A DNA stretch of 63,036 nt, filler included, from Syncephalis fuscata S228 (taxonomy: Eukaryota; Fungi; Zoopagomycota): the NCBI GenBank assembly GCA_025786725.1. It is 3 parts of 3 records of this genome, joined end to end, with 100 filler letters (N's around TTAATTAATTAA, not from the genome) between each part and the next. Parts side by side here need not be neighbours in the genome. Positions count along the whole stretch, not along the records: positions 28,247 to 57,006 come from JAHLTZ010000097.1; 2 more parts are not named here. One strand, written 5' to 3'. Below are positions 28,247 through 57,006 of this stretch, piece by piece; within the stretch, counting starts at the first letter, position 1; each line of letters begins with the position of its first letter. The translations under genes were made by a program, and so were the position numbers. The notes beneath the pieces were generated by a model. That model ran no database searches. It had not been told where the DNA came from and was given only the letters and a program-made list of their open reading frames with translations.

Positions 28247-29227
28247 TTTGCAAAAATCATTGTTCTAGATTTTATACCATTTATTACAGCTAAGCATGAA
28301 GGGCTCGAATTTAGCAATTATTTTGCTATCTTTTAGTTATATAAGCCATGATTGGTAAAAAACTGCTATTTTTACACGTTTAGTCATGATAAATACAGCA
28401 TCACACAGTACAATCACCGTATACTTTGCAAATAGCTATCTATATGTTATACGCATACTCGTGCAAATTTCATACAATTTGCTTGATCCTACATAAAGTT
28501 GTAAACAAGTTAAAAAGTTTTATTACTTAAATGATTACTACCTTTTAACGTACATTTCACTGCTGCTTACTAACTAGTTACATTAAAGCACTCGTTTAGT
28601 ATTGCTGCATACTGTCATACATTGAAACAATAATTCCACGTTTGGAGTTGCAAAATCACGTTTTATCAACATGTTATGGTATCACGAATAAAAATATTAC
28701 ATTTTATAACGGTTATATATAATAAAATGAATAATCTACATTACAGCCATAGTTATTATAAATACTATATGACAATGGTCATAGCAAATTAAAAGGAAAA
28801 AGTAGAAGTAACCAGAGCAACTATATTGAATAAGTTGTCTTGGATGTAATTATCTAGGATTATAGGCATATTTAATTGAAATTATAGTGAAAATAGCCGA
28901 TTATTTGCGATAAATTAGCGTTTTGATGCCAATTAAGCCGGAATAAGCGGATTTTAAGATTCATTTCTAACATAATACGATGGCGCGCATCGAATAGAAG
29001 TAAAAACAGGAAAAAAAATAAAATTTATAAAATTTATAAATATTAACAAGAATTAAATTAAAGATTATACTAGTTTATATGTATATATTTTAAAAAGCCA
29101 AAAAGTGGTAAAAAAGCGAATTAATTGAAAAAATAAATGTTTATTTAATATAGTATATAATTGGTATGATTTTTACGATGAATTACGAGTCAAATGGCCA
29201 ACATTTATAAAATTGATAGATAAGAAG

Positions 29228-30347
29228 TGTAACAAGTAAAGTGGTAACAACTTTTTTGTTACGACAAACCAAGTGTTAGAAGTACGACAATATTAGTTAC
29301 ACCACCTTCATTGCACTTATATAAAGAATAGTGGTATGTAGCTGACGATCCCTGACGATTTCTGACGATCCCTGACGATTTCTGACGATCCCTTAACTAT
29401 TTCCTGATATGGAACCTACGCATTTAATGTGTTAGCACAATACATTTACTAACAAATATCACCACTATAAATGTTTACAATACACTGTTACCAGTCGCTT
29501 ACTTGATTGTTTATGATATTGTAAGCTACTTAATAATTATTGAGTAATTAACGATTACATTAGTTTATATAATAGTAAACTAGATAATACTTGTAATGAA
29601 ACTAAAGAAATGAAATGAAGTAACTGATATCGCTTATTTAAGATAATAAAAAAAAGTGCTTTTTTATACCAAAAATGAGTTAAATTTAAAGATATTTGTA
29701 AAGGAAGAATCTGTTCGTTTCTTCCTTTTGGTATTGTATATGGGTATTAATTTACTTTAAGTGAATTAGCACCCATTTAATGTGCTAAATATTAAATAAA
29801 ATTGACAGGGCCTTTAAAAGAGTCCTGTCTTATTTACCCAGTATGTTAATTGGGGTACTGGCCGCGTGCTAAGCGAAAGCTACACAAATATTGTGCCTGA
29901 TTAAGTCACGTGATTATATGTCATATTAATTGTAATTACCGTATATGGTAATGAGGTATATAAAATCATGTGATTAGATTATTATATTTATTAGCTACGA
30001 AAGAGGTGGAGGGGTAAATGGGTGCAACAAAGTAATATTTAATAATATTCTGATTGGGCCATTAACACCATCTATGAATAATTCTAATCAATCCAAAGTG
30101 TCTTTACATACACACACACACACACCACAAGCTCACACAAAAAAGTGCCCACACTTCACAACCTGGTCTAATTACTAAAACCATATTTTATTTTTCTCGT
30201 TCTGTAATACTTTTTATTATAATAAAATATGGCAATTAACACCAGTTTTTTTAAAATAAAATATTATATTTAGTGTCCGTAACAACACACACGTAATAAA
30301 AAACATGCTCTATTTTTATTCACAATATTGCGTTTACGGTTGTTACA
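29228..30347 (+). mobile_element. Family-A LTR (TGTAACA...TGTTACA) interrupted by an about 0.8-kb insertion at 29486-30284
   Basis: 5' part nearly identical to the LTR at 36106-36402; the LTR resumes after the insertion; 4-bp TSD ACAC. Confidence 0.8.
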
Positions 30348-31150
30348 GTCGCGATAATCCGTGTCGATAACACCAGCTAGTACATTGATCCTGTGTTTTG
30401 CTGCCAGCCCACTTCTTGACGCAATACGTTTATAAATCCCTTTTGGTATTTCCATCGCAATATCCGTATTGACTTCTCGTCGTTTACGCGGGGGCAGCTC
30501 AACCGTTTCTGCGGCATATAAGTCATAACCTGCAGCTCTCTTAGTTGCTTATTAGAAATATCAGCTTTAGTACTTAATAAACTAACTAACTATTTTTCTC
30601 CCATTCTCCACTTTACTTTCCTCATCGTTACCGCCCATGGCCACATATCCTTTCCGTATTCCACTTGCCACGAGAGGTGGTCGTGATAATGCATCTGCCA
30701 CAACATTGCTGGAACCTTTTTATATTTCAGTTCATAGTTGTATTCGGATAGTTGTAGGGCCTATTGGGCTAACTTCCGGTTTAACGTTTTATTGCGCGTG
30801 ATGTATGGTAGTGCTTGGTGGTTCGTTCGTATAATGACTTTAGTATGTAGGATGTAGTGTCGGAACGTGTCCAAAGCCCAAATAACTGCTGCGGCTTCTA
30901 GTTCCGTTGCGCTGAGGTTCTTTTCAAGTTGCGACAGACTTCGGCTGGCGAATCAGACAGGACGTATTTCTCCAACGTCATTGACTTAAGCCAAGACTGC
31001 ACACATACCACTATAGGCTGAGTCGGTTTCTAGGATAAACGTGTCGTTGAAGCTAAGATTTACTAACACTAGGATAGCTGCAAGGGCCTTTTTCAAATCT
31101 TCAAATTTAGCTTGATGACTATCGTTCCATTATTCTTCAACAGACTTCGT
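30348..31150 (-). pseudogene. Ty3/Gypsy RNase H-dUTPase fragment (mirror copy)
   Basis: Reverse complement of 36836-37638; ORF 30270-30455 translates identically to ORF 37531-37716. Confidence 0.88.
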
Positions 31151-31882
31151 TGTAACAAACCGTAAACGCGATGTTGTGAATAAAAATAGATAATAATTTT
31201 TATTATATATGTGCGTTGTTAAACTATTTTATAGTTGCGATATTTTTAGTAAGTGTATTATGCTAATAATGTTAAATGTGTAATTTTCATATTAGAAGAT
31301 AGTTAAGAGATTGTCAGGGATCGTCAGGGATTATCGGTTACATACTGTAATATGTAAAACAAACGAAATAAAAGTAATAAATTAGTTTTTATTGAATAAT
31401 GTTTTATATATCAAAATAAAGGAGGTATTATAGACATGTGTATTACATTTCAGTAAACAATGCAATATAATGTTTGTGTATAGCATTATACTGGCTTTAT
31501 TGTAGTAAATGTAACATTACACATGCTACACATACCAATATTATTTATATAAGTGCAATGAAGGTGGTGTAGTTAATATTGTTTGTAACAACAGTAAACA
31601 CAGTATAGTGAATAAAAACAGATAATAATTTTTATTATGTGCATGTATTGTTAAACATTTTATAGTGGTGATATTTGTTAGTAAATGTATTGTGCTAACA
31701 CATTAAATGCGTAGGTTCCATATCAGGAAATAGTTAAGGGATCGCCAGGGATCGTCAGGGATCGTCAGCTACATACCACTATTCTTTATATAAGTGCAAT
31801 GAAGGTGGTGTAACTAATATTGTCGTACTTTTAACACTTGGTTTGTCGTAACAAAAAAGTTGTTACCACTTTACTTGTTACA
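31151..31882 (-). mobile_element. Nested LTRs (mirror of 36106-36835): family-A LTR 31584-31882, older family-A LTR part 31151-31583, and 185-bp solo LTR 31346-31530
   Basis: TG..CA termini; CATAC TSD around the 185-bp element. Confidence 0.8.
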
Positions 31883-32574
31883 GCAAGTAGTCATGGCCGC
31901 TCAACAGCTATCAGGAGCCGCCGCTATTTGGTATTAGTCGATACGCAGTAGTGCTACACCCTACAAAACATGATAACAACTGAATAATGGCATATTGGAA
32001 CGCTTTAGCGATAATCGATTAGCAGACATTGCCCGTCTGGAACTTACACGGCTACGCTGGTCGGAAAATTAAGATATTGAAGAACATAGCAGTAACTTCA
32101 CTACGTTACGTAGCCGTATCCCAGACGCCGCCGACATGGAGCTAGTCACGGCCTTTCGAGTTACATTACTTCCTGAATATTTGGCAGATTCAATTTGTAA
32201 TACGCCTAGTAATATCAGCAAAGTTTATACCTCTACGCGTGATTTTATTATTTAAGAAAGCACAGATTACAACACTTGGTACAAGCGCCAACTGAATTCA
32301 ACAACGGGCCAACTCCAATGGATTTGGATACAATAGTACAAGTTTTAAATAGCCTAGGCTTTACTAATAATAGCAATAATAATAGTAGTACCAGTAATTA
32401 AAATAATGCGTCTAGATGCTATGCATGTAACAGACACGGTCATTTAGCCAGAAATTGTAATCGCAATAACAACTGTAATTACAACAGTCGTGACAACAAC
32501 AATCAACAGCAAGCCAATAGTCTATATTTACAGCCAGCAAATGTCGGCGCCCAAGCAAACAATAACGTAATACA

Positions 32575-32620
32575 GGGAAACGACAACGGTCAGTAATCAA
32601 GTGCGGCACACTTACTGACG
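32575..32620 (+). promoter_or_regulatory. Putative -1 ribosomal frameshift signal at the gag/pol junction
   Basis: Slippery GGGAAAC followed after about 7 nt by stem GTCAGT..AAGTG/CACTT-ACTGAC; gag stop lies inside the stem; the -1 frame runs toward the protease. Confidence 0.7.
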
Positions 32621-35600
32621 GCCAGTTTGCCGCTAATACTCCGATACCACTCGGATTTGAGCAATCCACGCTCATTCAAGACCACGTTAGTTCCGGAGTA
32701 ATTAAAGTATCACCTAAAATCAATGGTGTTCCAGCTCATGTATAATCGATTCTGGTGCATTCACCAACTTTATGGATATTGAGTTTGCCAAGAAAGCACA
32801 AGTACATGTTACGGAACAAGCAAATTCAACAAATGTGAAGCTGAGAAATGGTATGGAGTGCGGTTTATTTGGTACTGCTAATACAGTGCCTACTATTTTC
32901 AAATATTTAAAAAAGCAAATTGATTTTACTATTATGAAACTAGGCAATTATAATGCAGTGCTAGGTATGCCGTGGCTGAGAAGACATGAAGCGCATGTAG
33001 ATTGGAACGCTGGTGTCATTAATTCTAATTGTAATTCCGTACCTAAAATTACAGTAGAAAACAACGACAAATTACATTTTTATTCATGAAATAGAAGAAG
33101 TAGAACAGACGGAGGCCAACGATATGATTTTATTAACAATGATAAAAGAAAACAAAGAAAAAAATAATACATTGTTAAATGGCCGTCACGCACGACTGTT
33201 GGGTGAGTTTGCCGATGTTGGGCTGGAAGAATTGCCATCTGGTTTACCACCAAAAAGAGACATTGACATACGTATCAATTTGGTGCCACATCAGCAGCCA
33301 CCATTTCGGCCTACATACCATTTGGCAAAGAAGGAGTTAGATGAATTGAAGAAGCGGCTTGATGATTTGCTGGAAAAGGGCTTTATTAGGCCTAGTACAT
33401 CACTATTTGGTGCGTCTGTGCTATTTGTGCGGAAGAAAGGAGGTGATTTACGTATGTGTGTGGATTACAGAATGTTAAACGCACAAACAATTCGTGATCG
33501 TTATGCGTTGCCACTGATCGATGAATTATTCGATCAGTTACATGGGGCAAAGGTGTTCTCAAAAATAGATTTGAGAAGTGGATATCATCAAATAAGAGTA
33601 AATGAGGATGATATTCACAAAACAGCGTTTAGAACGCGCTATAGGCATTATGAGTAGACGGTGATGGGATTTGGATTGACTAATGCACCGTCAGTATTTA
33701 TGCAATTAATGCATAATTCATTTCATAAATTACTAGACAATTGTGTAGTGGTATTTTTAGACGATATTTTAATTTTCAGTAAAAATCATGCGGAACATGA
33801 GTAGCACTTACGGCAAGTGTTACAGTTATTAAGAGAAAATAAATATGTCAAATTAAGTAAATGTAAATTTGGCAAAAATGAGGTGGAATTTTTGAGACAT
33901 ATTATTAGTGGCGATGGTATAAGACCATTACACGATAAAGTGATGGCTATTGCGAATTGGCCTATACCAAACAATCTAAAAGAATTACGCTCATTTCTCG
34001 GATTAACCGGCTATTATAGACGGTTTATTTGTGGATATGCTGATACTGCATGAAATCGAACAATTTACTAAGCATAATGGACCATTCAGATGGGGGAGGG
34101 GTAATCAAAATGCAGCGTTTGGCGCACTGCGTAAAGCGATTATTACAGCACCGGTATTAACAATATTAAATGTTAATGCGCCATTTATCGCTACTACAGA
34201 TGCGTCTGATTATGCAATTAGTGCGGTATTATCGCAAGTAACTGATAATAATGAACATCCTGTTGCGTTTATGTCGCTAATATTACAGGCAGCTGAAAAG
34301 AATTATGTTACTACGATAAAAAATGTTAGCTATTCTAGAAGCTACTAAGCTGTGGTGCCCATATCTTAGCTATGGCCATTTTGTAATATATACTGACCAT
34401 GCACCGCTCATGCGCCTGTTTAAGCAAAAGGAAATGCCATCGCTTCAAACGCGTTGAATTGAACAGTTACATCAATATGGTTTTGATAGCATATATAAGC
34501 TAGGCCGTCCTAGTGTTGTAGCCGATGCACTGTCGCGACGTACGTCGCCTAGTTGTAGCGCTATAGATGCTACAAATCTCTCTTCATTTCAACAGCGTGT
34601 TTTAGCTGGTTAAGATTATGATGAGCACCTTACAGGTGTAAAGAATGTTCTTATGGAACGAAGGGCTGCAGGCAATGCTGCTGCAGTTAAAATTTTGCGA
34701 CATTTTTGGCTTAACAATCATGGATTAATGTACAAATTAAAATACATTGAGCCACGATTATGTATATCAAATTACAATAATTTGTATTTGGATATACTGA
34801 ATGCTCATCATGATGCTGCTGCTCACTTCGGCGAAAAAAAGACTATTGCAGCCATTAAGCGTAAATATTATTGGCCTAAATTGTCTAATATGACAAAGCA
34901 TTATATCCAGTCATGTGAAGTGTGTCAACGTACTAAACACTTACAGCAGCTATCTGGCGGATTATTGCAGCCACTACCAATTCCAAGTGGACGTTGGCGC
35001 GATATTTCAATGGATTTTATAGTACATTTACCACGCACTAGCGGTGGTTACGAGGCCATTTTTGGTATAGTTGGCCGCTTTACCAAGCGTGCTTACTTTG
35101 TACCAATGAAGACGACAGCTACGGCTGTTGATGTTGCCCACTTGTTCATGCAGAACATTGTACGTCTTCATGGTATGTCCCAATTTATTGTATGTGATTA
35201 CGACGCCAAGTTTACCAGTAAATTTTGGCAAGAATTGCATAGAATACTTAACGTACGTATATTTATGTCAATGACATTCCATCCTGAAACAGATGGCCAA
35301 ACAGAACGCGTAAATCGTACATTAGAACAATGTTACGTGCCTGTGTTAAATATCAACAAAATGACTGGTATCAACATTTAGCATTGATTGAATTTGCCTA
35401 CAATAATGCTAAGCAGTCATCAACTGGCAAATCGCCGTTCTATATTGATTTAGGTAGTCACAGATGCATGCCAGATGATTTAGTGCGGCAACACAACTTT
35501 GACAATAACACTAACGTGCAAAGTGCTGCAGCATTCTTGAAGAAAAAAAAGAAGGACATTTATTTAGAAACACGCGAAGCATTAAAGAAGGTACAAGAAC

Positions 35601-36105
35601 GACAAAAACAATATGCGGATCAGAAACGACGAGAAGTGGAATTTAAAGTTGCTGATTTGATACTATTATCAGCAAATAATTTAATACCTGAAGCAGAATA
35701 TGAATGATTAAAACGTAAATTGACTCATCAATTTACTGGGCCATTCAAGATTGTTAAATGTGTATTGGCCGTAGTGTACAAATTACAATTAGCACCTAAT
35801 ATGAAAATACACGATGTATTCCATGTTAGTCTATCAAAGAAGTACGAAGAAAATCCACCAAAGTTTGTAGATCGTTATCCATTATCGCCACCACCAGAAA
35901 TAATATATGGAGAAGAAGAATACGAAGTAAAGGCCATATTATCTAAACGCATCAAGTGTAATAAGGTGGACTATTTTGTTAAATAGAAAGGCTATGCAGT
36001 ACACGACGCAGAACGGCAACAATTACATGACTTGGATAACGCCCAAGAGCTTGTACAAGAATTCGAAAAGCAACACCAAAGTCGGCGTTAATCTAAGGGG
36101 GATGA

Positions 36106-36402
36106 TGTAACAAGTAAAGTGGTAACAACTTTTTGTTACGACAAACCAAGTGTTAAAGTACGACAATATTAGTTACACCACCTTCATTGCACTTATATAA
36201 AGAATAGTGGTATGTAGCTGACGATCCCTGACGATCCCTGGCGATCCCTTAACTATTTCCTGATATGGAACCTACGCATTTAATGTGTTAGCACAATACA
36301 TTTACTAACAAATATCACCACTATAAAATGTTTAACAATACATGCACATAATAAAAATTATTATCTGTTTTTATTCACTATACTGTGTTTACTGTTGTTA
36401 CA
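36106..36402 (+). mobile_element. 3' LTR (family A, 297 bp)
   Basis: TGTAACAA...TTGTTACA termini, directly after the PPT; TATA-like tatataaa and aataaa; internal ctgacgatcc decamer repeats. Confidence 0.88.
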
Positions 36403-36455
36403 AACAATATTAACTACACCACCTTCATTGCACTTATATAAATAATATTGGTATG

Positions 36456-36640
36456 TGTAGCATGTGTAATGTTACATTTACTACAATAAAGCCAGTATAA
36501 TGCTATACACAAACATTATATTGCATTGTTTACTGAAATGTAATACACATGTCTATAATACCTCCTTTATTTTGATATATAAAACATTATTCAATAAAAA
36601 CTAATTTATTACTTTTATTTCGTTTGTTTTACATATTACA
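36456..36640. mobile_element. 185-bp solo LTR (family B) inserted in an older family-A LTR
   Basis: TGTAG...TTACA ends with perfect 5-bp TSD GTATG; the host LTR resumes on both sides. Confidence 0.8.
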
Positions 36641-36835
36641 GTATGTAACCGATAATCCCTGACGATCCCTGACAATCTCTTAACTATCTTCTAATATGAA
36701 AATTACACATTTAACATTATTAGCATAATACACTTACTAAAAATATCGCAACTATAAAATAGTTTAACAACGCACATATATAATAAAAATTATTATCTAT
36801 TTTTATTCACAACATCGCGTTTACGGTTTGTTACA

Positions 36836-37638
36836 ACGAAGTCTGTTGAAGAATAATGGAACGATAGTCATCAAGCTAAATTTGAAGATTTGAAAAAGGC
36901 CCTTGCAGCTATCCTAGTGTTAGTAAATCTTAGCTTCAACGACACGTTTATCCTAGAAACCGACTCAGCCTATAGTGGTATGTGTGCAGTCTTGGCTTAA
37001 GTCAATGACGTTGGAGAAATACGTCCTGTCTGATTCGCCAGCCGAAGTCTGTCGCAACTTGAAAAGAACCTCAGCGCAACGGAACTAGAAGCCGCAGCAG
37101 TTATTTGGGCTTTGGACACGTTCCGACACTACATCCTACATACTAAAGTCATTATACGAACGAACCACCAAGCACTACCATACATCACGCGCAATAAAAC
37201 GTTAAACCGGAAGTTAGCCCAATAGGCCCTACAACTATCCGAATACAACTATGAACTGAAATATAAAAAGGTTCCAGCAATGTTGTGGCAGATGCATTAT
37301 CACGACCACCTCTCGTGGCAAGTGGAATACGGAAAGGATATGTGGCCATGGGCGGTAACGATGAGGAAAGTAAAGTGGAGAATGAGAGAAAAATAGTTAG
37401 TTAGTTTATTAAGTACTAAAGCTGATATTTCTAATAAGCAACTAAGAGAGCTGCAGGTTATGACTTATATGCCGCAGAAACGGTTGAGCTGCCCCCGCGT
37501 AAACGACGAGAAGTCAATACGGATATTGCGATGGAAATACCAAAAGGGATTTATAAACGTATTGCGTCAAGAAGTGGGCTGGCAGCAAAACACAGGATCA
37601 ATGTACTAGCTGGTGTTATCGACACGGATTATCGCGAC
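36836..37638 (+). pseudogene. RNase H + dUTPase fragment of a second Ty3/Gypsy family
   Basis: FILETDSA, FASRSL..LEKN.SATELEAAAVIWAL, NVVADALSR, then dUTPase motifs AGYDL, RSG, GVIDTDYR; stops present; cut by LTR ends on both sides. Confidence 0.88.
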
Positions 37639-38775
37639 TGTAACAACCGTAAACGCAATATTGTGAATAAAAATAGAGCATGTTTTTTATTACGTGTGTG
37701 TTGTTACGGACACTAAATATAATATTTTATTTTAAAAAAACTGGTGTTAATTGCCATATTTTATTATAATAAAAAGTATTACAGAACGAGAAAATAAAAT
37801 ATGGTTTTAGTAATTAGACCAGGTTGTGAAGTGTGGGCACTTTTTTGTGTGAGCTTGTGGTGTGTGTGTGTGTATGTAAAGACACTTTGGATTGATTAGA
37901 ATTATTCATAGATGGTGTTAATGGCCCAATCAGAATATTATTAAATATTACTTTGTTGCACCCATTTACCCCTCCACCTCTTTCGTAGCTAATAAATATA
38001 ATAATCTAATCACATGATTTTATATACCTCATTACCATATACGGTAATTACAATTAATATGACATATAATCACGTGACTTAATCAGGCACAATATTTGTG
38101 TAGCTTTCGCTTAGCACGCGGCCAGTACCCCAATTAACATACTGGGTAAATAAGACAGGACTCTTTTAAAGGCCCTGTCAATTTTATTTAATATTTAGCA
38201 CATTAAATGGGTGCTAATTCACTTAAAGTAAATTAATACCCATATACAATACCAAAAGGAAGAAACGGACAGATTCTTCCTTTACAAATATCTTTAAATT
38301 TAACTCATTTTTGGTATAAAAAAGCACTTTTTTTTATTATCTTAAATAAGCGATATCAGTTACTTCATTTCATTTCTTTAGTTTCATTACAAGTATTATC
38401 TAGTTTACTATTATATAAACTAATGTAATCGTTAATTACTCAATAATTATTAAGTAGCTTACAATATCATAAACAATCAAGTAAGCGACTGGTAACAGTG
38501 TATTGTAAACATTTATAGTGGTGATATTTGTTAGTAAATGTATTGTGCTAACACATTAAATGCGTAGGTTCCATATCAGGAAATAGTTAAGGGATCGTCA
38601 GAAATCGTCAGGGATCGTCAGAAATCGTCAGGGATCGTCAGAAATCGTCAGGGATCGTCAGCTACATACCACTATTCTTTATATAAGTGCAATGAAGGTG
38701 GTGTAACTAATATTGTCGTACTTCTAACACTTGGTTTGTCGTAACAAAAAAGTTGTTACCACTTTACTTGTTACA
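37639..38775 (-). mobile_element. Family-A LTR on the minus strand, interrupted by a 796-bp element (37702-38497)
   Basis: Insert has TGTTAC...GTAACA ends and a 4-bp TSD GTGT; removing it restores a collinear LTR. Confidence 0.8.
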
Positions 38776-40463
38776 CTTCTTATCTATCAATTTTATAAAT
38801 GTTGGCCATTTGACTCGTAATTCATCGTAAAAATCATACCAATTATATACTATATTAAATAAACATTTATTTTTTCAATTAATTCCTTTTTTTACCACTT
38901 TTTGGCTTTTTAAAATATATACATATAAACTAGTATAATCTTTAATTTAATTCTTGTTAATATTTATAAATTTTATAAATTTTATTTTTTTTCCTGTTTT
39001 TACTTCTATTCGATGCGCGCCATCGTATTATGTTAGAAATGAATTTAAAATCCGCTTATTCCGGCTTAATTGGCATCAAAACGCTAATTTATCGCAAATA
39101 ATCGGCTATTTTCACTATAATTTCAATTAAATATGCCTATAATCCTAGATAATTACATCCAAGACAACTTATTCAATATAGTTGCTCTGGTTACTTCTAC
39201 TTTTTCCTTTTAATTTGCTATGACCATTGTCATATAGTATTTATAATAACTATGGCTGTAATGTAGATTATTCATTTTATTATATATAACCGTTATAAAA
39301 ATGTAATATTTTTATTCGTGATACCATAACATGTTGATAAAACGTGATTTTGCAACTCCAAACGTGGAATTATTGTTTCAATGTATGACAGTATGCAGCA
39401 ATACTAAACGAGTGCTTTAATGTAACTAGTTAGTAAGCAGCAGTGAAATGTACGTTAAAAGGTAGTAATCATTTAAGTAATAAAACTTTTTAACTTGTTT
39501 ACAACTTTATGTAGGATCAAGCAAATTGTATGAAATTTGCACGAGTATGCGTATAACATATAGATAGCTATTTGCAAAGTATACGGTGATTGTACTGTGT
39601 GATGCTGTATTTATCATGACTAAACGTGTAAAAATAGCAGTTTTTTACCAATCATGGCTTATATAACTAAAAGATAGCAAAATAATTGCTAAATTCGAGC
39701 CCTTCATGCTTAGCTGTAATAAATGGTATAAAATCTAGAACAATGATTTTTGCAAAAAATATTAGTCAAAAATGTATTTTTGTGTAACTTTTTTGCAAAA
39801 GAGTATGTAAATTTGAAGATTTTAGAAATACTAATATTAAAACAAATATACATTCATTCAAATACAAAAAGGCTTTATAATGCTAAACAAGCATAATAAC
39901 AGGTTGACATACAGAAGTTCTAATTTACAGTGGCAATTTATGCCATTCATATACACATATAGCGTAAAAACAATGTGGCATGTCATGTACTGAATTCTAC
40001 GTCAATTTATAGCCATTAAGTTGTAAATATGGATGGTAGATAACAGTGTACGCGATTTCAATACAAACGATATAGATTGATGAAAAATTGCAATAATTAC
40101 ATATAATTTTGGATATATACTACGTGATCTATAACGTTTGAATATTGGCTATATTACCACTGATTATTTAGTTGAATCCATCATATATTACATACTTTTC
40201 ATTCATATATGTATTTTTCATAAGCCAAACACTGACGTAATAATTGTGACTTACAGAAAGAACTGTTATAAGCATTAAAAGACCATTTTTAATTAGTGTA
40301 AATATTTGTATTTCAGTGCAGTGTGCAGCCATTTGTCTTAGACTTAAGTAATAAGATAATAACGCTGTTTTGATTTATGTTAATTCGTGTAAACTTAAAT
40401 AAAGATTATTAGTCAAATAAAATAATAGTAATAATAACAATTTAGACTACATGGCCAGCATTC

Positions 40464-42286
40464 CTAATGTACTTTCAATTGCGGCGTAGCCGAAAGACTG
40501 CGCTTGTGTAGTACGCCAATAGGTGTTGAATCCTGGTCATTTGCAGGATATCGTCGCTGCGCTTGTTCCTGCTGTTTTAGCTTTTTACTAAGCAGTGCCA
40601 AGTCGAAATTGTTAGGCAGCGAAGGTTCATCTTCAGCCAATTTCGGTGTCTTTCTCTGACTTGAGCTCGACCGTCTCGACTGATTATCATGGGATGATGC
40701 AGTTCGACGATGTGTGCTACCGCCTGCTGGCTTCGCGCCAACCTTGCTTGACGATTTGGAGCGACGCATTGGTGAATCAACTGGTATCGACTTGCCAGTA
40801 ACTGTAGAGGAACGACTAACAACTGCATGCTTGTCACTATGCAATCTATGCGTACTTGGTTGTCGTGAAACCGATTTTCCCGCATCACTATGTTCATTCG
40901 CTGTTTGTCCCAATGACGTTTGGCTTTTGTGCGCTGCACTATGGCCAAATGTATTGGCGCGACGTGCCGTTCCTGAGCGATGTACCGATGATTTGCGCGA
41001 AGCAGCACGCGACGCCGATCTAGACACCGGCTGTGACGAGCCTGTTGATGTTTGGTTATCACGTGTTGCGGACGGCTCTACGCCCAAATCAACAACTACC
41101 GATGTCATCATAGCCGTTGGATTTGCATTGCGAGTACTTGTTTTCAACGGCATTATTTCCGCTATATCTTTGACAACTACCGCTTCTACAGGCGACATTG
41201 TCGCTGCTCTGTTCATATTAATTTCTTTTTCATTGAAATCCTGAACATTAGTGTAGCCGTCGTCGCGACCTTTACGCTGGCGCCCATTGCTACTATTGCC
41301 TAATGAGGCTGCAGCACCACCCATAGCATTCCAAAGACGGCTTTGGCGTATATTATTTCTTAGGCCGCCACTATTGCTTGTTCCATTTGGTCCTGATCCT
41401 GCGCCATATGCTGCGCCTGGATCGCCGTCTTTATCATTGCCACGCGATTCCATCGGTATCGTGTTGGTATAATGCGTGGCCGGATTAGGCGTTCGTACAA
41501 TGGTACCATTGGATTTGCCAGGAAATACTCGGCGAATGATGGCATAGGCAACACCGATAGCAATAATGCCGAATGCCACGCCAATGCCAATAGCTACTGG
41601 CTTAGTAACATTGCCAAATGGACCAAGATAAACTGTCTCATCGCCGCTTGAAGAAGGCTTGCTTTCCGACGAGTCCGTCATAACATCGGGACATTGAATG
41701 TTTTGCTCACATCGATCTTTAAAAATCGACAGCTCCACTGGTGGAGTGCCGCTAACGTTTGATGGCTGTTGTACTACTATTTGCGCCTCAAATTTGTTTG
41801 GATTATTGCCGGTGCAGTCATAACTGGTGGGTACAGTGCCGTTTGTACAGGTTGCGCCACCCGTGGCTGACCCGACAAAACGATACGTAGCTGGAAATGA
41901 GATAAGTGCCCGATAAATGTTATTGTTATCTTTAATGTCGGAGTGCACACCAAAAACTGTGATATTGTAAGTGTGTGTGCTGATTTCTGTCGTGCTTGTA
42001 GTAAAACAGCATGCTAATTACATATCACTGGTTAGTTTCCGGTTCTGTATATTGCCATTAAACCAATTTAATTCAATTGCCGTGTGTTCAATTTGCTACT
42101 TTATTATTACACAAGATATAGCATATTTATTATCTTCCATGCTGTCTCAGCCGTCGTTGCATTACTCTCCTACCCCCTTGATACTATCAATATACACGTA
42201 TTCTTACCTCCAGCCAGTACTTGAGTGATGCCGGTGCAAAGCAGCACCAATACTGCTGCGTAACGCTGTATCAAGCAACGACTCAT
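40464..42286 (-). CDS. Single-pass type I membrane protein: signal peptide, Cys-containing ectodomain, TM helix, long Ser/Arg-rich disordered tail
   Basis: Exon 1 MSRCLIQRYAAVLVLLCTGITQVLAG spliced (phase 1) to the long open exon; TM VAIGIGVAFGIIAIGVAYAII followed by RR. Confidence 0.8.
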
Positions 42287-46918: not shown

Positions 46919-48503
46919 ATGGTTTCACTTACAGCTACATTATCCCGACGATGGAAACAATCGTCATCGACCACGCTACTTGCCGTCGGCCTTCTAAGTA
47001 ATCTTTTGTCCATGGTGTCGGTCGTGTCATCGGAAGCCACGGAACAAGCACCAAAATACGACGCTGCTCTGTCACCCGAGCAAAATCCATATGGCTTCAA
47101 AGTAAGCTACGGCGTGGTCTGGCTAAATGAAGAACAGCACGCCTTTGGTGGCCAGTTCAACATTTCAATGTCCAGGCCCATTAAAGGTGCCAGCTGGGTG
47201 CTAAAGTTCCAGTTTGCCGACAGCAATACGCGCGCCGATAATTACTGGGGCCAATGGGACCTAGAACATATTACAAACACCACCTATAATCTTGCTAAGC
47301 CAAAGCCACTAGATAATGGTGTGGATATTGTAGAAGAAGGTGACACAACGGTCCATTCCTATGCCTTCAACGGAAAATACAACAACGATGATAAGAATGC
47401 CATCTATCCAAACTACTATGCCTACGCACCCAACGACAAGGTTAAACCCGTTATTTTGACACCGTTTGAAGTGAGCAATAAGAAGTTACCAGATACACCA
47501 TTGCCCACTTCCCCACCTGGCGAATACAATCGTCAGCAACGTACGGCCAGTGCGGGTAGCGCCACAAACGCAGTGGGCGGCAACGATTCAAACAGTGCGA
47601 GTGCCGACTCTAACTCGAGCGGTAATGTCAGTGCTGGAAGTGGTTCATTAACAGGCATTACCATTCTTGGTGGTATTCTGGCTGTTGGTCTAACTGTTGT
47701 AGGCATTGCCACGTACCGCCGTCGTGAATATCGCCGAGATGTCGCCACCAAAAAGGACGATACAATCCTTCCCAAATTTGCTCCTGACAGTATGGCAAAG
47801 GATGCCGTTAAAATGCCACCCCCTTCGGCTATTAACAACCATTCAGTAGCTGCCCGTGCTGCCGCCGGTGCAGTAATTATGGAGGAAATGAATGCCGATC
47901 AAGCCATGGCCGAAGAATACTACGTCATGGAGGATGTGGCACCCGATGCCCACCATCACCACTTGGAGATGGCGGCCGACGAATACAACGCCATAGAAGC
48001 CATGCCGGAACATGACGATGGCGTCTATTATGCTGAATACGATGCTGAGATGCACCAAGAGTTCTACCCGATGGAAGGTGAAGGCCAATACGAAATGGAA
48101 GAGCCATACGTGATGGTCATGGCGAGGCCATGTACGAAGGCGAATACGTTGAAGGCCTTCCAGACTACGCCATCCAGTATGACGATGAGGTTGGCTATGA
48201 CGGCATATGGACGAAGCCAACCATGAAGTCTACCACGTAGAAGAGACTGCCAACCATAACAATGCGTCTGGTGGCAACGGTGCAATTGAACACGTTGATC
48301 TTCGCGCACCAGTGGCCCAGGAATACTACGTATCTAATGCCATTGCCTATGACGATGAGGGACACGATCTAGGATTAGACCAATCAGCACATGATGGCCA
48401 CGACCAAGGTTACGGCCATGCCTACGAGGCTGGTGACTACGAGGCCACAGAGTTCGACGATGGTCAATATGAACAGCAACAACACCACCACCACCAATAC
48501 TAA
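46919..48503 (+). CDS. Single-pass membrane protein: signal sequence, aromatic beta-rich (possibly carbohydrate-binding) ectodomain, Ser/Asn linker, TM helix, acidic Tyr/His-rich tail; two apparent frameshifts
   Basis: 435-aa ORF with TM GITILGGILAVGLTVVGIATY-RRR; acidic tail composition continues in two other frames to TAA at 48503. Confidence 0.75.
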
Positions 48504-51077: not shown

Positions 51078-51148
51078 GCTGTAGTGGTGTAGTGGTATCA
51101 CAAGACGTTGTGGCCGTCTTAACCCTGGTTCGATTCCAGGCTATAGCA
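51078..51148 (+). tRNA. tRNA-His (GTG)
   Basis: Acceptor GCTGTAG/CTATAGC+A; A-box TGGTGTAGTGG; anticodon stem AGACG/CGTCT with loop TTGTGGC; T arm CCTGG-TTCGATT-CCAGG; downstream T5 terminator. Confidence 0.95.
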
Positions 51149-53343: not shown

Positions 53344-54643
53344 ATACTAGCATACTATCGGCTGTAATAATGCATCAATCAGCTATACGTGTACCGATAC
53401 TAATTGCCACATTGATCAGTCGTGCCATTGATCAGTGAACAACAACATACTGTGGCTAATTACGGCCAATAGTTGTAGCTGTATAGCAGCAACAATCATC
53501 GGTAACGTTAACAACGAAATCAGCTGTAAAATATGTGATTATTAGTCGATATTAATTAGTGGTATTGCGATAGAGTCATAATGACACCAATCAGTATTGG
53601 ACAGCAGTATTGATATCGCAATGTATATGTTCGACATCAACAACTGTTAAATAACAGATATACTGACATACATGCAGCTACTAGCAGCCGCTCATAATAT
53701 TATTAATCATGTTAATAAACGGAATTTATTATACAGTCAATAGTAATCTTAGTTACCATATTATATTTACAGTATAAAGCAGCACAATTGAATATATAGC
53801 AATAATAGTAATCGGTATGAAATTGATTACGTCAACGCCACATGTTGCTATATGTTATATACAGCCACTAGTTACTAGTGATATATGACATTCCATCAAT
53901 GCTATATTAGCTGGTTTATTAACCAGCTGGCAAGTAGTACGACATTTATTTACGCACAAATACATTAATACAATGCTACTAACCAGATGTATGTTAGCTA
54001 CTATTAAGCAGCCAATAGTGTTAATCAGAAATGGCAATGTTTTATTAGCAATTACATGCACAATAGCAACTATCAACAATCAGCTTCGGTAATATAATTG
54101 CTGTATATCTATATATACTGCTATTGTTGATTGGTAATAGTAATATTGGCTATTGTAAAACCGTGGATCAAGCAAAATAATTGTAACAAGCATTTTTGCC
54201 ATTTTTATCAGTTATAATAGTCAGTAATTGCTGGTCATGCATAATGATATGTGTACTAATAGCTATTGACTAACCAGATAAAACCATCAGTAGTGATTAG
54301 CACATTGACAATACATATGCCAGTATATCTGTTATTTAACAGTTGGTTGATGTCGAACATATACATTGCGATATCAATACTGCTATCCAATACTGATTGG
54401 TGTCATTATGACTCTATCGCAATACCACTAATTAATATCGACTAATAATCACATATTTTACAGCTGATTTCGTTGTTAACGTTACCGATGATTGTTGCTG
54501 CTATACAGCTACAACTATTGGCCGTAATTAGCCACAGTATGTTGTTGTTCACTGATCAATGGCACGACTGATCAATGTGGCAATTAGTATCGGTACACGT
54601 ATAGCTGATTGATGCATTATTACAGCCGATAGTATGCTAGTAT
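53344..54643. repeat. Foldback: about 325-bp near-perfect inverted repeats (53344-53670 / 54316-54643) around a 650-bp non-coding spacer
   Basis: atactagcatactatcggctg...ataacagatatactg matches its reverse complement cagtatatctgttat...cagccgatagtatgctagtat. Confidence 0.9.
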
Positions 54644-56219: not shown

Positions 56220-57006
56220 GGTGACATTATTTAACCAATTGACTGATTAATTAACTATCAAACGAATTATTAACTAACTAGTTGATTGACCAATGTTAGC
56301 TGGCTATTACTCTTAGCTAAACTAGTTGACAAGTATTGAATAGCAATCATTACTAATTAACTAAATTAATTGATTAATTATTAAACAACAATTATTATTA
56401 ACTAGTTAGCTAATTAACAAGTATTAAACACCAAGTACTATTGACTAGAATAATTAATTAACTATTAAACAACTGTCATTATTAGGCAATTAGGCAATTA
56501 ACTAATATTAAATATACTATTGATAACTAATTAATTACTAGTATTAGATAAATTATTGCTAACTAATTATTAAACACCAATTATTAATAATTAATTATAT
56601 TTTATTTATCTGTCCAATCTACAGAGCAAAACTTTTAGCAACTAACTTTTCAGATCGATCTGAAAAACCACTTTATTAATTAATTAACTATTAGCTAATA
56701 TTAAACAAATTATTGTTAACTAAAGGTAATTGACTAATCTTAGCTGGCCATTACTATTTATTAACTAGGTTAATTAATTTACTAGTGCTAGACAACAATC
56801 GCTATTAACTAGTTAACCAATTGACAAGTATTAAACGGCAATCACTATTAATCGACTAGAATAATTGATTAATTAACCAACTAATTAACTAGTATTAAGT
56901 GCACTATTAACATCAACTATTACCTGAATTACTATTAGCTGGCTATTAATATTAATTAACTAATATTAAATAAATTATTAACTAACTATTAACTGGATTA
57001 CTATTA
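56220..57006. repeat. AT-rich low-complexity, satellite-like tract at contig end
   Basis: Dense ttaattaacta/actag words; tagctggc(t/c)atta three times, ttgacaagtatt twice. Confidence 0.7.

Follow-up and report, generated by a model that had tools for sequence, protein, structure and literature searches.

How did a Ty3/gypsy coding region of Syncephalis fuscata S228 come to lie between two long inverted arms: through an unusual mobile element, a rearrangement in the cell, or an artefact of the assembly? The window, meaning the whole stretch of DNA that was analysed, is 63,036 nucleotides long. It includes JAHLTZ010000097.1, the whole 28,760-bp contig, and position 28247 is base 1 of that contig. 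The deposited sequence does contain the palindrome. An arm alignment shows that 28247-31882 is the reverse complement of 36106-39756, as the sequence-only reading had proposed. The arms are identical in 3,626 of 3,657 columns, with 10 difference events over ~3.64 kb and perfect inverted blocks of up to 1,645 nt. An inverted repeat of this kind cannot be chance. The arms enclose a 4,223-bp spacer (31883-36105), a decayed Ty3/gypsy chromovirus that starts inside gag and ends with the polypurine tract, and an LTR terminus sits exactly at each of the two inner junctions. The right arm opens at the T of TGTAACA (36106), straight after the purine tract at 36095-36105, and the left arm closes with TGTTACA at 31882 against gag. 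Both placements agree with the sequence-only reading, and the LTR start is confirmed independently by copy d at 29228, which opens with the same bases after unrelated flank. The features are collected in Table 1.

Table 1. Features of the palindrome, its spacer and its arms (window positions)
Feature	Position	Strand	Remarks
Left arm	28247..31882	-	mirror copy of 36106-39756, from contig base 1
AT-rich flank, mirror	28247..29227	.	mirror of 38776-39756, ~1 kb
LTR copy d (29228-29484), 795-bp stretch, 68-bp fragment c (30280-30347)	29228..30347	+	left-arm mirror
Mirror of RNase H + dUTPase fragment	30348..31149	-	other gypsy family
Mirror of truncated older LTR b	31150..31583	-	
Antisense LTR a'	31584..31882	-	U3-start terminus adjoins gag
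Internal region of dead chromovirus	31883..36105	+	single-copy spacer; Pfam, tblastn
Partial gag with CCHC knuckle (32402-32593)	in spacer 31883..36105	+	
Protease	~32730-33041	+	
RT	33112-34050	+	
RNase H	34082-34312	+	
Integrase	34320-35330	+	
SH3 + chromodomain-aligned end	35720-36079	+	
Polypurine tract	36095..36105	+	immediately 5' of 3' LTR
3' LTR a, 297 bp	36106..36402	+	8-bp terminal inverted repeat TGTAACAA / TTGTTACA; three 10-bp tandem units
Older LTR b	36403..36836	+	without first ~55 bp; 184-bp insert; ~81% like a
pol fragment of different gypsy family, with stops	36837..37638	+	Pfam domains
RT_RNaseH_2/RT_RNaseH in pol fragment	36857-37222	+	
dUTPase in pol fragment	37438-37636	+	PF00692 in public gene call too
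LTR 3' fragment c (37639-37706), 792-bp stretch, LTR copy d (38499-38775)	37639..38775	-	right arm
AT-rich flank	38776..39756	.	last mirrored stretch

The spacer had been taken for a Ty3/gypsy element with a DDE integrase, and its contents agree: rve and H2C2, a CCHC knuckle, protease, RT, RNase H and SH3. Pfam matches in the spacer are RVT_1, RT_RNaseH_2, Integrase_H2C2 and rve, and by tblastn 32730-36079 is colinear with polyproteins in the order PR-RT-RNase H-integrase. The stretch 35321-36079 aligns to P0017 940-1187, where 1135-1184 is Pfam Chromo; in the spacer the chromodomain-aligned stretch is split in two by a stop, and Pfam scores neither piece. The pol has at least six in-frame stops and at least four frame changes. 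The polypurine tract and 3' LTR are both present at the right end. Other copies of the element in the same assembly were sought with the integrase ORF, which matched nothing above 57% identity; two database matches belong to other assemblies, and the search yielded no canonical 5' end. Copies of the family are 6-10% apart.

One can imagine a very large mobile unit, foldback-type or DIRS-like, that carries gypsy genes between long inverted termini and moves as a whole, as the sequence-only reading offered as an alternative. What it explains is the overall shape, long inverted arms around coding sequence, and nothing else. The Pfam search finds the DDE integrase (rve, H2C2) and no tyrosine recombinase, and 28247-40500 contains no further long ORF. 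The arms are nested LTR debris plus flank, not element termini: three unrelated LTR-element fragments are followed by flank that runs straight into host genes. Past 39756 the mirroring stops, and the contig runs on into two Syncephalis-like genes, one at 40464-41948 (-) and the other at 46919-48503 (+). Terminal subrepeats are absent. The tandem repeats in the arms are short arrays (9-20 bp, 2-7 units) that mostly lie within LTR copies, and the arms are not built of subrepeats. No second palindrome unit exists elsewhere in the contig, and the genes of this one are dead. We find a mobile unit scarcely credible.

The same debris dates the mirror. Copy d is 84-90% like 3' LTR a, and the direct LTR-like copy at 29228-29484 belongs to the mirror. 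Since the same broken debris is found in both arms, the duplication came after the decay, as had been argued from the sequence. Another candidate, that the left arm contains the missing 5' part of gag, is rejected, as its antisense LTRs adjoin an antisense RNase H-dUTPase fragment. RIP-type indices are uninformative in the AT-rich DNA of this locus.

The new junction is at 31882/31883. There the antisense LTR terminus is fused to gag with no PBS, as previously described, and ~12 residues precede Retrotrans_gag, compared with 39-128 in relatives. Neither a PBS nor a self-priming match is recognisable at this junction, and no direct LTR with a PBS is found there. Antisense LTR a' differs from LTR a at two sites only. 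Both are 1-bp homopolymer indels, situated 29 and 53 bp from the junction, and in each case a' has the length of paralogue d. The chance of both differences falling within 54 bp of the junction is ~0.03. A hybrid LTR with one switch point would be expected to show this pattern, and a' may well be such a hybrid. We argue that an antisense LTR copy probably does adjoin the truncated gag. It could also be that the junction is the native boundary of LTR and leader and that the strand folded back on the 8-bp terminal inverted repeat of the LTR itself. The in-frame ATG that follows the junction by 10 nt would suit this, but the 39-128 residues of the relatives and the lack of a recognisable PBS make it rather unlikely. 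Auto-integration had been suggested as the source of the inverted LTR. On that model PBS and gag should both stand, in antisense, on the left side of this LTR; neither is there, and the auto-integration circle is rejected.

Where the symmetry ends is a separate matter. Base 1 of the contig already belongs to the left arm, which the contig end therefore truncates. The outer ends of the palindrome lie beyond the contig, and within it there is no sign of an outer junction, of a telomere repeat or of a deletion partner.

A retroelement could have made the mirror without being a mobile palindrome. In an inverted 3' transduction, a DNA copy that begins exactly at the U3 end of the 3' LTR and extends through several kb of host flank would be captured antisense in the element's own gag. 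The copy would start by read-through or PPT priming and insert by its LTR end, leaving a palindrome of host DNA. This scenario accounts for a junction exactly at the first base set by plus-strand synthesis or integrase processing. It also fits an antisense LTR that is a post-decay copy of 3' LTR a and not a fresh family member. However, the element and its relatives look old, with copies 6-10% apart and a pol full of stops; neither an outer end nor a poly(A) stretch or target duplication is visible; and a fold-back covers the same facts with known steps. We consider it highly improbable. Even taken together, explanations that are retroelement-specific or mobile in any way are very unlikely.

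This leaves a fold-back, and the question becomes whether two physical copies exist. The arm differences named earlier are present: the 20-bp unit (2.6 copies in the left arm and 3.6 in the right), the AC-repeat length, and sites 28958, 29116, 29715 and 30601. Four 1-bp homopolymer differences can be added to that list (28701, 30191, 31829 and 31853). The ten differences are 8 indels and 2 substitutions, both transitions, scattered across both arms. It must be noted that two 1-nt frame breaks, within ~90 nt, interrupt 1.5 kb of a nearby conserved single-copy gene of this contig, while the alignment to its homologue runs on unbroken. This implies that the record is an indel-noisy consensus of long-read type. 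By this comparison the arm differences do not exceed the noise of the assembly, and the arms are indistinguishable from identical ones. The differences are real, but the idea of two diverging copies does not follow, as noise of this level matches them.

Public data are four small 2017 runs from one sample, which were compared with 30500-36500. They cover 6-15% of words in run-specific patches of 150-800 bp at a depth of 3-10. This patchiness looks like that of separately amplified low-input libraries, and the DNA behind the assembly may likewise have been amplified. At this 6-15% coverage, exact contigs end at 31808 and restart at 31913. None of the contigs from these patchy runs crosses either inner junction or covers an arm-difference site in 30500-36500. 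A search by accession and prefix found no literature naming GCA_025786725.1 or its prefix.

We argue that the palindrome is, on balance, a technical product, a fold-back sequencing or assembly chimera, and that the mirror join was most likely made outside the cell. It lies at a contig end, no contig from the patchy runs bridges it, and its arm differences are at noise level. A left arm that begins at base 1 of the contig is how the overhang of a chimeric read would end. The right-hand 25 kb of the contig would be genuine genome: a dead chromovirus that lacks its 5' end and spans part of gag through the polypurine tract, then its 3' LTR of 297 bp, older LTR debris and host genes. The ~3.3 kb to the left of the antisense LTR would be a second rendering of the right flank, added when a DNA end or nascent strand within that LTR folded back, paired with the near-identical 3' LTR 4.2 kb away and was extended along the right flank, leaving gag-pol as a single-copy loop. 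The likeliest route would be a strand-displacement amplification chimera, or a similar read or assembly chimera, kept as a contig-end overhang. Displacement amplification makes mostly inverted chimeras, primed at complementary sequence, and they are a known source of mis-assembly in assemblies of amplified DNA (PMC1855051; bioRxiv 10.64898/2026.06.11.730069). LTR-primed fold-back copying, as first suggested, is the best-fitting mechanism; its placement in the cell is not supported, given an arm that runs off the contig end and no bridging contig.

Other technical routes can be set aside. Plain short-read graph traversal is excluded by the 1,645-nt identical block with differing variants on both sides, and a missed-adapter or template-complement palindromic read would leave no 4.2-kb spacer. 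There are also points against a technical chimera. Had the assembly been made from unamplified long reads, inverted chimeras in register would be rare. A false overlap of 297 bp is below the usual thresholds of long-read assemblers at default settings. A genuine fold-back duplication gives the same sequence, and long real arms also break a contig. The two substitutions that separate the arms are transitions, which predominate among natural changes between copies of this family, and this mildly favours two physical copies.

The strongest competitor is an inverted duplication in the cell. An antisense LTR, solo or nested, would have lain in gag and later paired with the 3' LTR. A break or stalled fork would then lead to a fold-back or faulty template switch that mirrored the right flank, with gag-pol as the single-copy spacer. 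The arms would be kept identical by arm-to-arm gene conversion or by youth, and could be far longer than 3.6 kb, hence the contig break. The layout, with inverted copies, a 4,223-bp single-copy spacer and a 297-bp LTR pair at the spacer edges, is that of known fold-back inverted duplications (PMC3907307). In these, the single-copy spacer measures 766-70,466 bp (median 3,428), and at some junctions two Alu or L1 copies of ~300 bp in opposite orientation form a hybrid repeat (PMC3907307). In yeast, widely spaced inverted repeats fold back well in single-stranded DNA (PMC10164571). The hybrid-LTR pattern is seen here, the transitions point the same way, and a long real palindrome would by itself account for a contig that stops inside an arm. 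Against this, the patchy public runs give no read-level or depth support, just 3.6 kb of overhang was assembled, and a single contig on record carries the neighbour gene at 40464-41948. The contig shows neither an outer junction nor a telomere repeat or deletion partner, and noise-level differences do not demonstrate two physical copies. We hold this origin to be a serious possibility, if one that falls short of probable.

A technical chimera is thus more likely than a real inverted duplication, and the locus is not a new class of mobile element. If it is technical, it is a contig-end inverted chimera seeded at an LTR pair, and contig-terminal palindromes or 'inverted-LTR gypsy' calls from this assembly should be discounted. 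If it is genuine, it is a natural case in which retrotransposon LTR pairs of an early-diverging fungus gave rise to a fold-back inverted duplication. That would be a known kind of event, well studied in yeast and human disease. Either way, no Ty3/gypsy element with inverted termini is shown. Fold-back or template-switch joins are known both in cells and, as inverted chimeras, in amplified DNA (PMC3907307; PMC1855051).

The locus can be set beside several known systems. The spacer is like fungal Ty3/gypsy chromoviruses (Metaviridae) in its gag(CCHC)-PR-RT-RH-IN order, with a stretch that aligns to the chromodomain of relatives after it, and in its PPT and TG...CA LTRs, and it lies inside a nest of older LTR fragments, as in nested-insertion clusters of these elements. 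It departs from their layout at the left junction, which has no direct 5' LTR, PBS or gag start and where the LTR is antisense. The palindrome shares inverted terminal sequences around coding sequence with DIRS and Foldback (FB) transposons, but has no tyrosine recombinase, internal complementary region, subrepeat arms or sign of mobility, its arms being flank and debris. A kb-scale single-copy spacer is found in human inv-dup/terminal-deletion chromosomes (PMC3907307) and in yeast foldback inversions and inverted-repeat fusion (PMC7467729, PMC10164571). As in those cases, inverted homology marks the spacer edge and the point where the duplication begins. In the present contig two LTRs supply that homology, the host is a zoopagalean fungus, and the case is known from a deposited contig only. 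Multiple displacement amplification yields inverted chimeras with reported priming homologies of 2-21 nt, far shorter than the up to 297 bp here (Lasken and Stockwell 2007, PMC1855051; bioRxiv 10.64898/2026.06.11.730069). By sequence their product is the same as that of a cellular fold-back, and, as at this locus, nearby stretches of one molecule are joined in inverted orientation.

The contig that carries the inverted repeat is one entire public record, JAHLTZ010000097.1 (28,760 bp, assembly GCA_025786725.1), at 28247-57006. A full alignment of the arms shows that 28247-31882 is the reverse complement of 36106-39756, as a sequence-only reading had proposed. Identical bases fill 3,626 of 3,657 columns, and the longest perfect inverted block is 1,645 nt. 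The symmetry ends sharply after TGTTACA, before a G, on the left (31882/31883), and between an A and TGTAACA on the right (36105/36106). The arm alignment finds no shared bases past either point, so that reading was right to put both inner junctions exactly at an LTR terminus. The left arm begins at base 1 of the contig, which means the true end of the symmetry is out of view.

The arms themselves are not element termini. They hold a series of broken pieces (see the table). The same broken debris is present in both arms, so the mirror must postdate the decay of all of it, and the earlier claim of a late duplication stands. The pol fragment of the right arm belongs to a second Ty3/gypsy family with its dUTPase downstream of RNase H (36857-37636, mirrored at 30350-31129); P0009, a distant relative, has the dUTPase placed before RT. 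The public annotation has a 198-aa "gene" at 35801-37716, pieced together out of the tail of the integrase, LTRs and second-family debris.

Features of the spacer and the right arm, in order along the contig
Feature	Position	Remarks
CCHC knuckle	32402-32593	
Purine tract	36095-36105	directly before the 3' LTR
3' LTR (a), 297 bp	36106-36402	8-bp terminal inverted repeat TGTAACAA/TTGTTACA
Older LTR (b)	36403-36836	without its first ~55 bp
Different gypsy pol fragment	RNase H 36857-37222; dUTPase 37438-37636	with stops
LTR end (c), 68 bp	right arm, after the different pol fragment	antisense
Stretch without assignment, 792 bp	right arm, between c and d	
LTR copy (d)	right arm	antisense; 84-90% like a
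AT-rich flank, 981 bp	last mirrored part of right arm	

Between the arms, the spacer (31883-36105) consists of a chromovirus-type Ty3/gypsy element. After the CCHC knuckle a domain search gives protease, RT, RNase H, H2C2 and rve integrase and a Tf2-type SH3, in that order, and full polyproteins are colinear with 32730-36079 by tblastn. Its final stretch aligns to the Chromo domain of relatives; Pfam gives no score to its two stop-split halves. The element is dead. In pol there are six or more in-frame stops and at least four changes of frame, and no frame of gag has fewer than 16 stops. Other family copies in public-run contigs are 6-10% different from it, with transitions dominant. Over 33251-34505, contigs from three of the runs (X2-X4) lie at that distance, with transitions outnumbering transversions about 4.5 to 1 in both directions, and show other genomic copies of the family. 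Cytosine deamination or a RIP-like process could explain the excess; dinucleotide indices are not decisive.

Gag text starts about 12 codons ahead of the Retrotrans_gag-like motif at the left junction, while in six relatives this domain begins at residue 39-128. No PBS or self-priming match was found at this junction. The short lead and the lack of a PBS mean that the gag start, PBS and 5' LTR are most likely missing, in agreement with the earlier remark that PBS and direct 5' LTR were absent there. One can imagine that the junction is instead the native boundary of LTR and leader, and an in-frame ATG 10 nt past it fits that idea, but given the short lead we consider it unlikely. A tRNA-His (GTG) gene lies at 51078-51148 (+); its 3' end shows no match to what follows the junction at 31883.

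The antisense LTR that abuts gag (a', 31584-31882) has no substitutions relative to the 3' LTR. With copies in this family several percent apart, so close a match would be unusual in an independent insertion. Only two differences separate them, 29 and 53 bp from the junction, and at both a' has the length of paralogue d while a has a 1-bp deletion. By chance, both would land among the innermost 54 of the 297 bp with a probability of about 0.03. The pattern fits a hybrid LTR. We propose that the inner few dozen bases of a' would be a separate antisense LTR truly abutting gag, joined there by integrase, which would give the exact terminus. After one switch, the 3' LTR and its flank would have served as the template for the rest of a' and all sequence leftward. 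In that case a fold-back or template switch would have joined two repeats of opposite orientation, and whatever lay between them would have stayed single-copy, as a loop. Auto-integration into gag, also suggested by the sequence-only reading, fails, since it would place antisense PBS and gag next to the inverted LTR and neither is there. That the retroelement itself made the mirror is very improbable. A missed-adapter palindromic read fails too, as it would leave no 4.2-kb spacer.

The ten arm differences are two transitions (29715, 30601), five 1-bp indels (28701, 30191, 31829 and 31853 in runs of 3-6 identical bases, 28958 outside runs), a complex change next to an A-run (29116), one AC-repeat unit (30110) and one 20-bp tandem unit (29341, 2.6 vs 3.6 copies). 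The arms are therefore similar but non-identical, as had been said. The Syncephalis-like gene at 46919-48503 (+) aligns to homologues without gaps in the query, yet its frame jumps near 48112 and at 48204. For two 1-nt breaks in an otherwise conserved gene, errors in the consensus are the best reading, which makes the record an indel-noisy consensus of the long-read kind. The public model of this gene (514 aa, 1,585 bp) appears to span the jumps by treating about 40 nt as an intron. Two independent noisy consensuses of one sequence would be expected to differ by about as much as the arms do (ten differences, eight being indels, distributed over both arms), so at this noise level the differences do not show two diverging copies. 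A short-read graph walked twice is ruled out: both arms would then be the same, and an identical stretch of 1.6 kb is too long for short reads to phase variants across it. Non-identical arms around such a block imply that each was built independently from long molecules or reads.

Past the right arm the symmetry is gone and the contig enters two genes, whose best-matching named relatives are proteins of Syncephalis (42-60% identity) and Thamnocephalis (46%), so the organism is a zoopagalean fungus. A second, small inverted repeat lies at 53344-54643 (arms 53344-53670 and 54316-54643, 99.1% identical, spacer 645 bp), its arms differing by two transitions and one 1-bp indel. It has no clear target duplication, with TA on both sides, and may be a small TIR element or foldback. 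At 56267-56992, diverged repeats of ~60-290 bp (67-82% alike) form an AT-rich array that reaches the right end of the contig and probably explains the stop there.

The same palindrome product is known from cells and from amplified DNA. In human inverted duplications the single-copy spacer measures 766-70,466 bp (median 3,428), and some of the junctions sit in inverted Alu/L1 pairs of ~300 bp, making a hybrid repeat (PMC3907307). Single-stranded DNA in yeast folds back at inverted repeats that lie far apart (PMC10164571). Of displacement-amplification rearrangements, >85% join two parts of one molecule in inverted orientation after priming at complementary sequence (PMC1855051), and inverted amplification chimeras lead to mis-assemblies (bioRxiv 10.64898/2026.06.11.730069).

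Four public runs exist for this organism, all from 2017 and one sample. They hold only 6-15% of words, in patches of 150-800 bp that differ from run to run and have a depth of 3-10; this looks like separately amplified low-input libraries. Such libraries are usual for these hard-to-culture fungi. In these four patchy runs (6-15% of words) no contig crosses 31882/31883, where exact contigs end at 31808 and restart at 31913, and none covers an arm-distinguishing site. Same-sample run contigs differ from the contig and from one another in homopolymer length at 31234, 31386 and 31413 (T5/T6, T5/T4, A4/A3) in b', the left-arm mirror of LTR b. The depth is appreciable and these are not arm-difference sites; either other LTR copies or read errors are responsible. 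The contig-end position, an overhang of only 3.6 kb, the lack of support and the probable amplification incline us slightly to a technical artefact, such as an amplification chimera. A genuine fold-back duplication in the cell is a serious possibility, if one we hold in some doubt. In its favour, amplification-free DNA seldom gives in-register inverted chimeras, a real palindrome of great length would by itself break a contig, and both arm substitutions are transitions. A 297-bp repeat is also too short to mislead long-read overlappers, whose default thresholds exceed this length. The LTR-primed fold-back of the sequence-only reading is the best-fitting mechanism for the join at inverted LTRs, though the join more likely took place outside the cell. 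The observation of that reading is confirmed and its interpretation partly supported; the feature itself is more likely an artefact than biology.

It scarcely seems credible that the whole is a mobile foldback or DIRS-like unit. DIRS elements differ, since the domain search gives a DDE integrase here and no tyrosine recombinase. Foldback transposons differ as well, because these arms lack a subrepeat build, have no further copies in the contig and show no target duplication within its bounds, and the suggested giant mobile foldback element finds no backing. The spacer is an ordinary dead chromovirus set in a nest of LTR debris, and the palindrome behaves like a fold-back inverted duplication, a known kind, cellular or in vitro.
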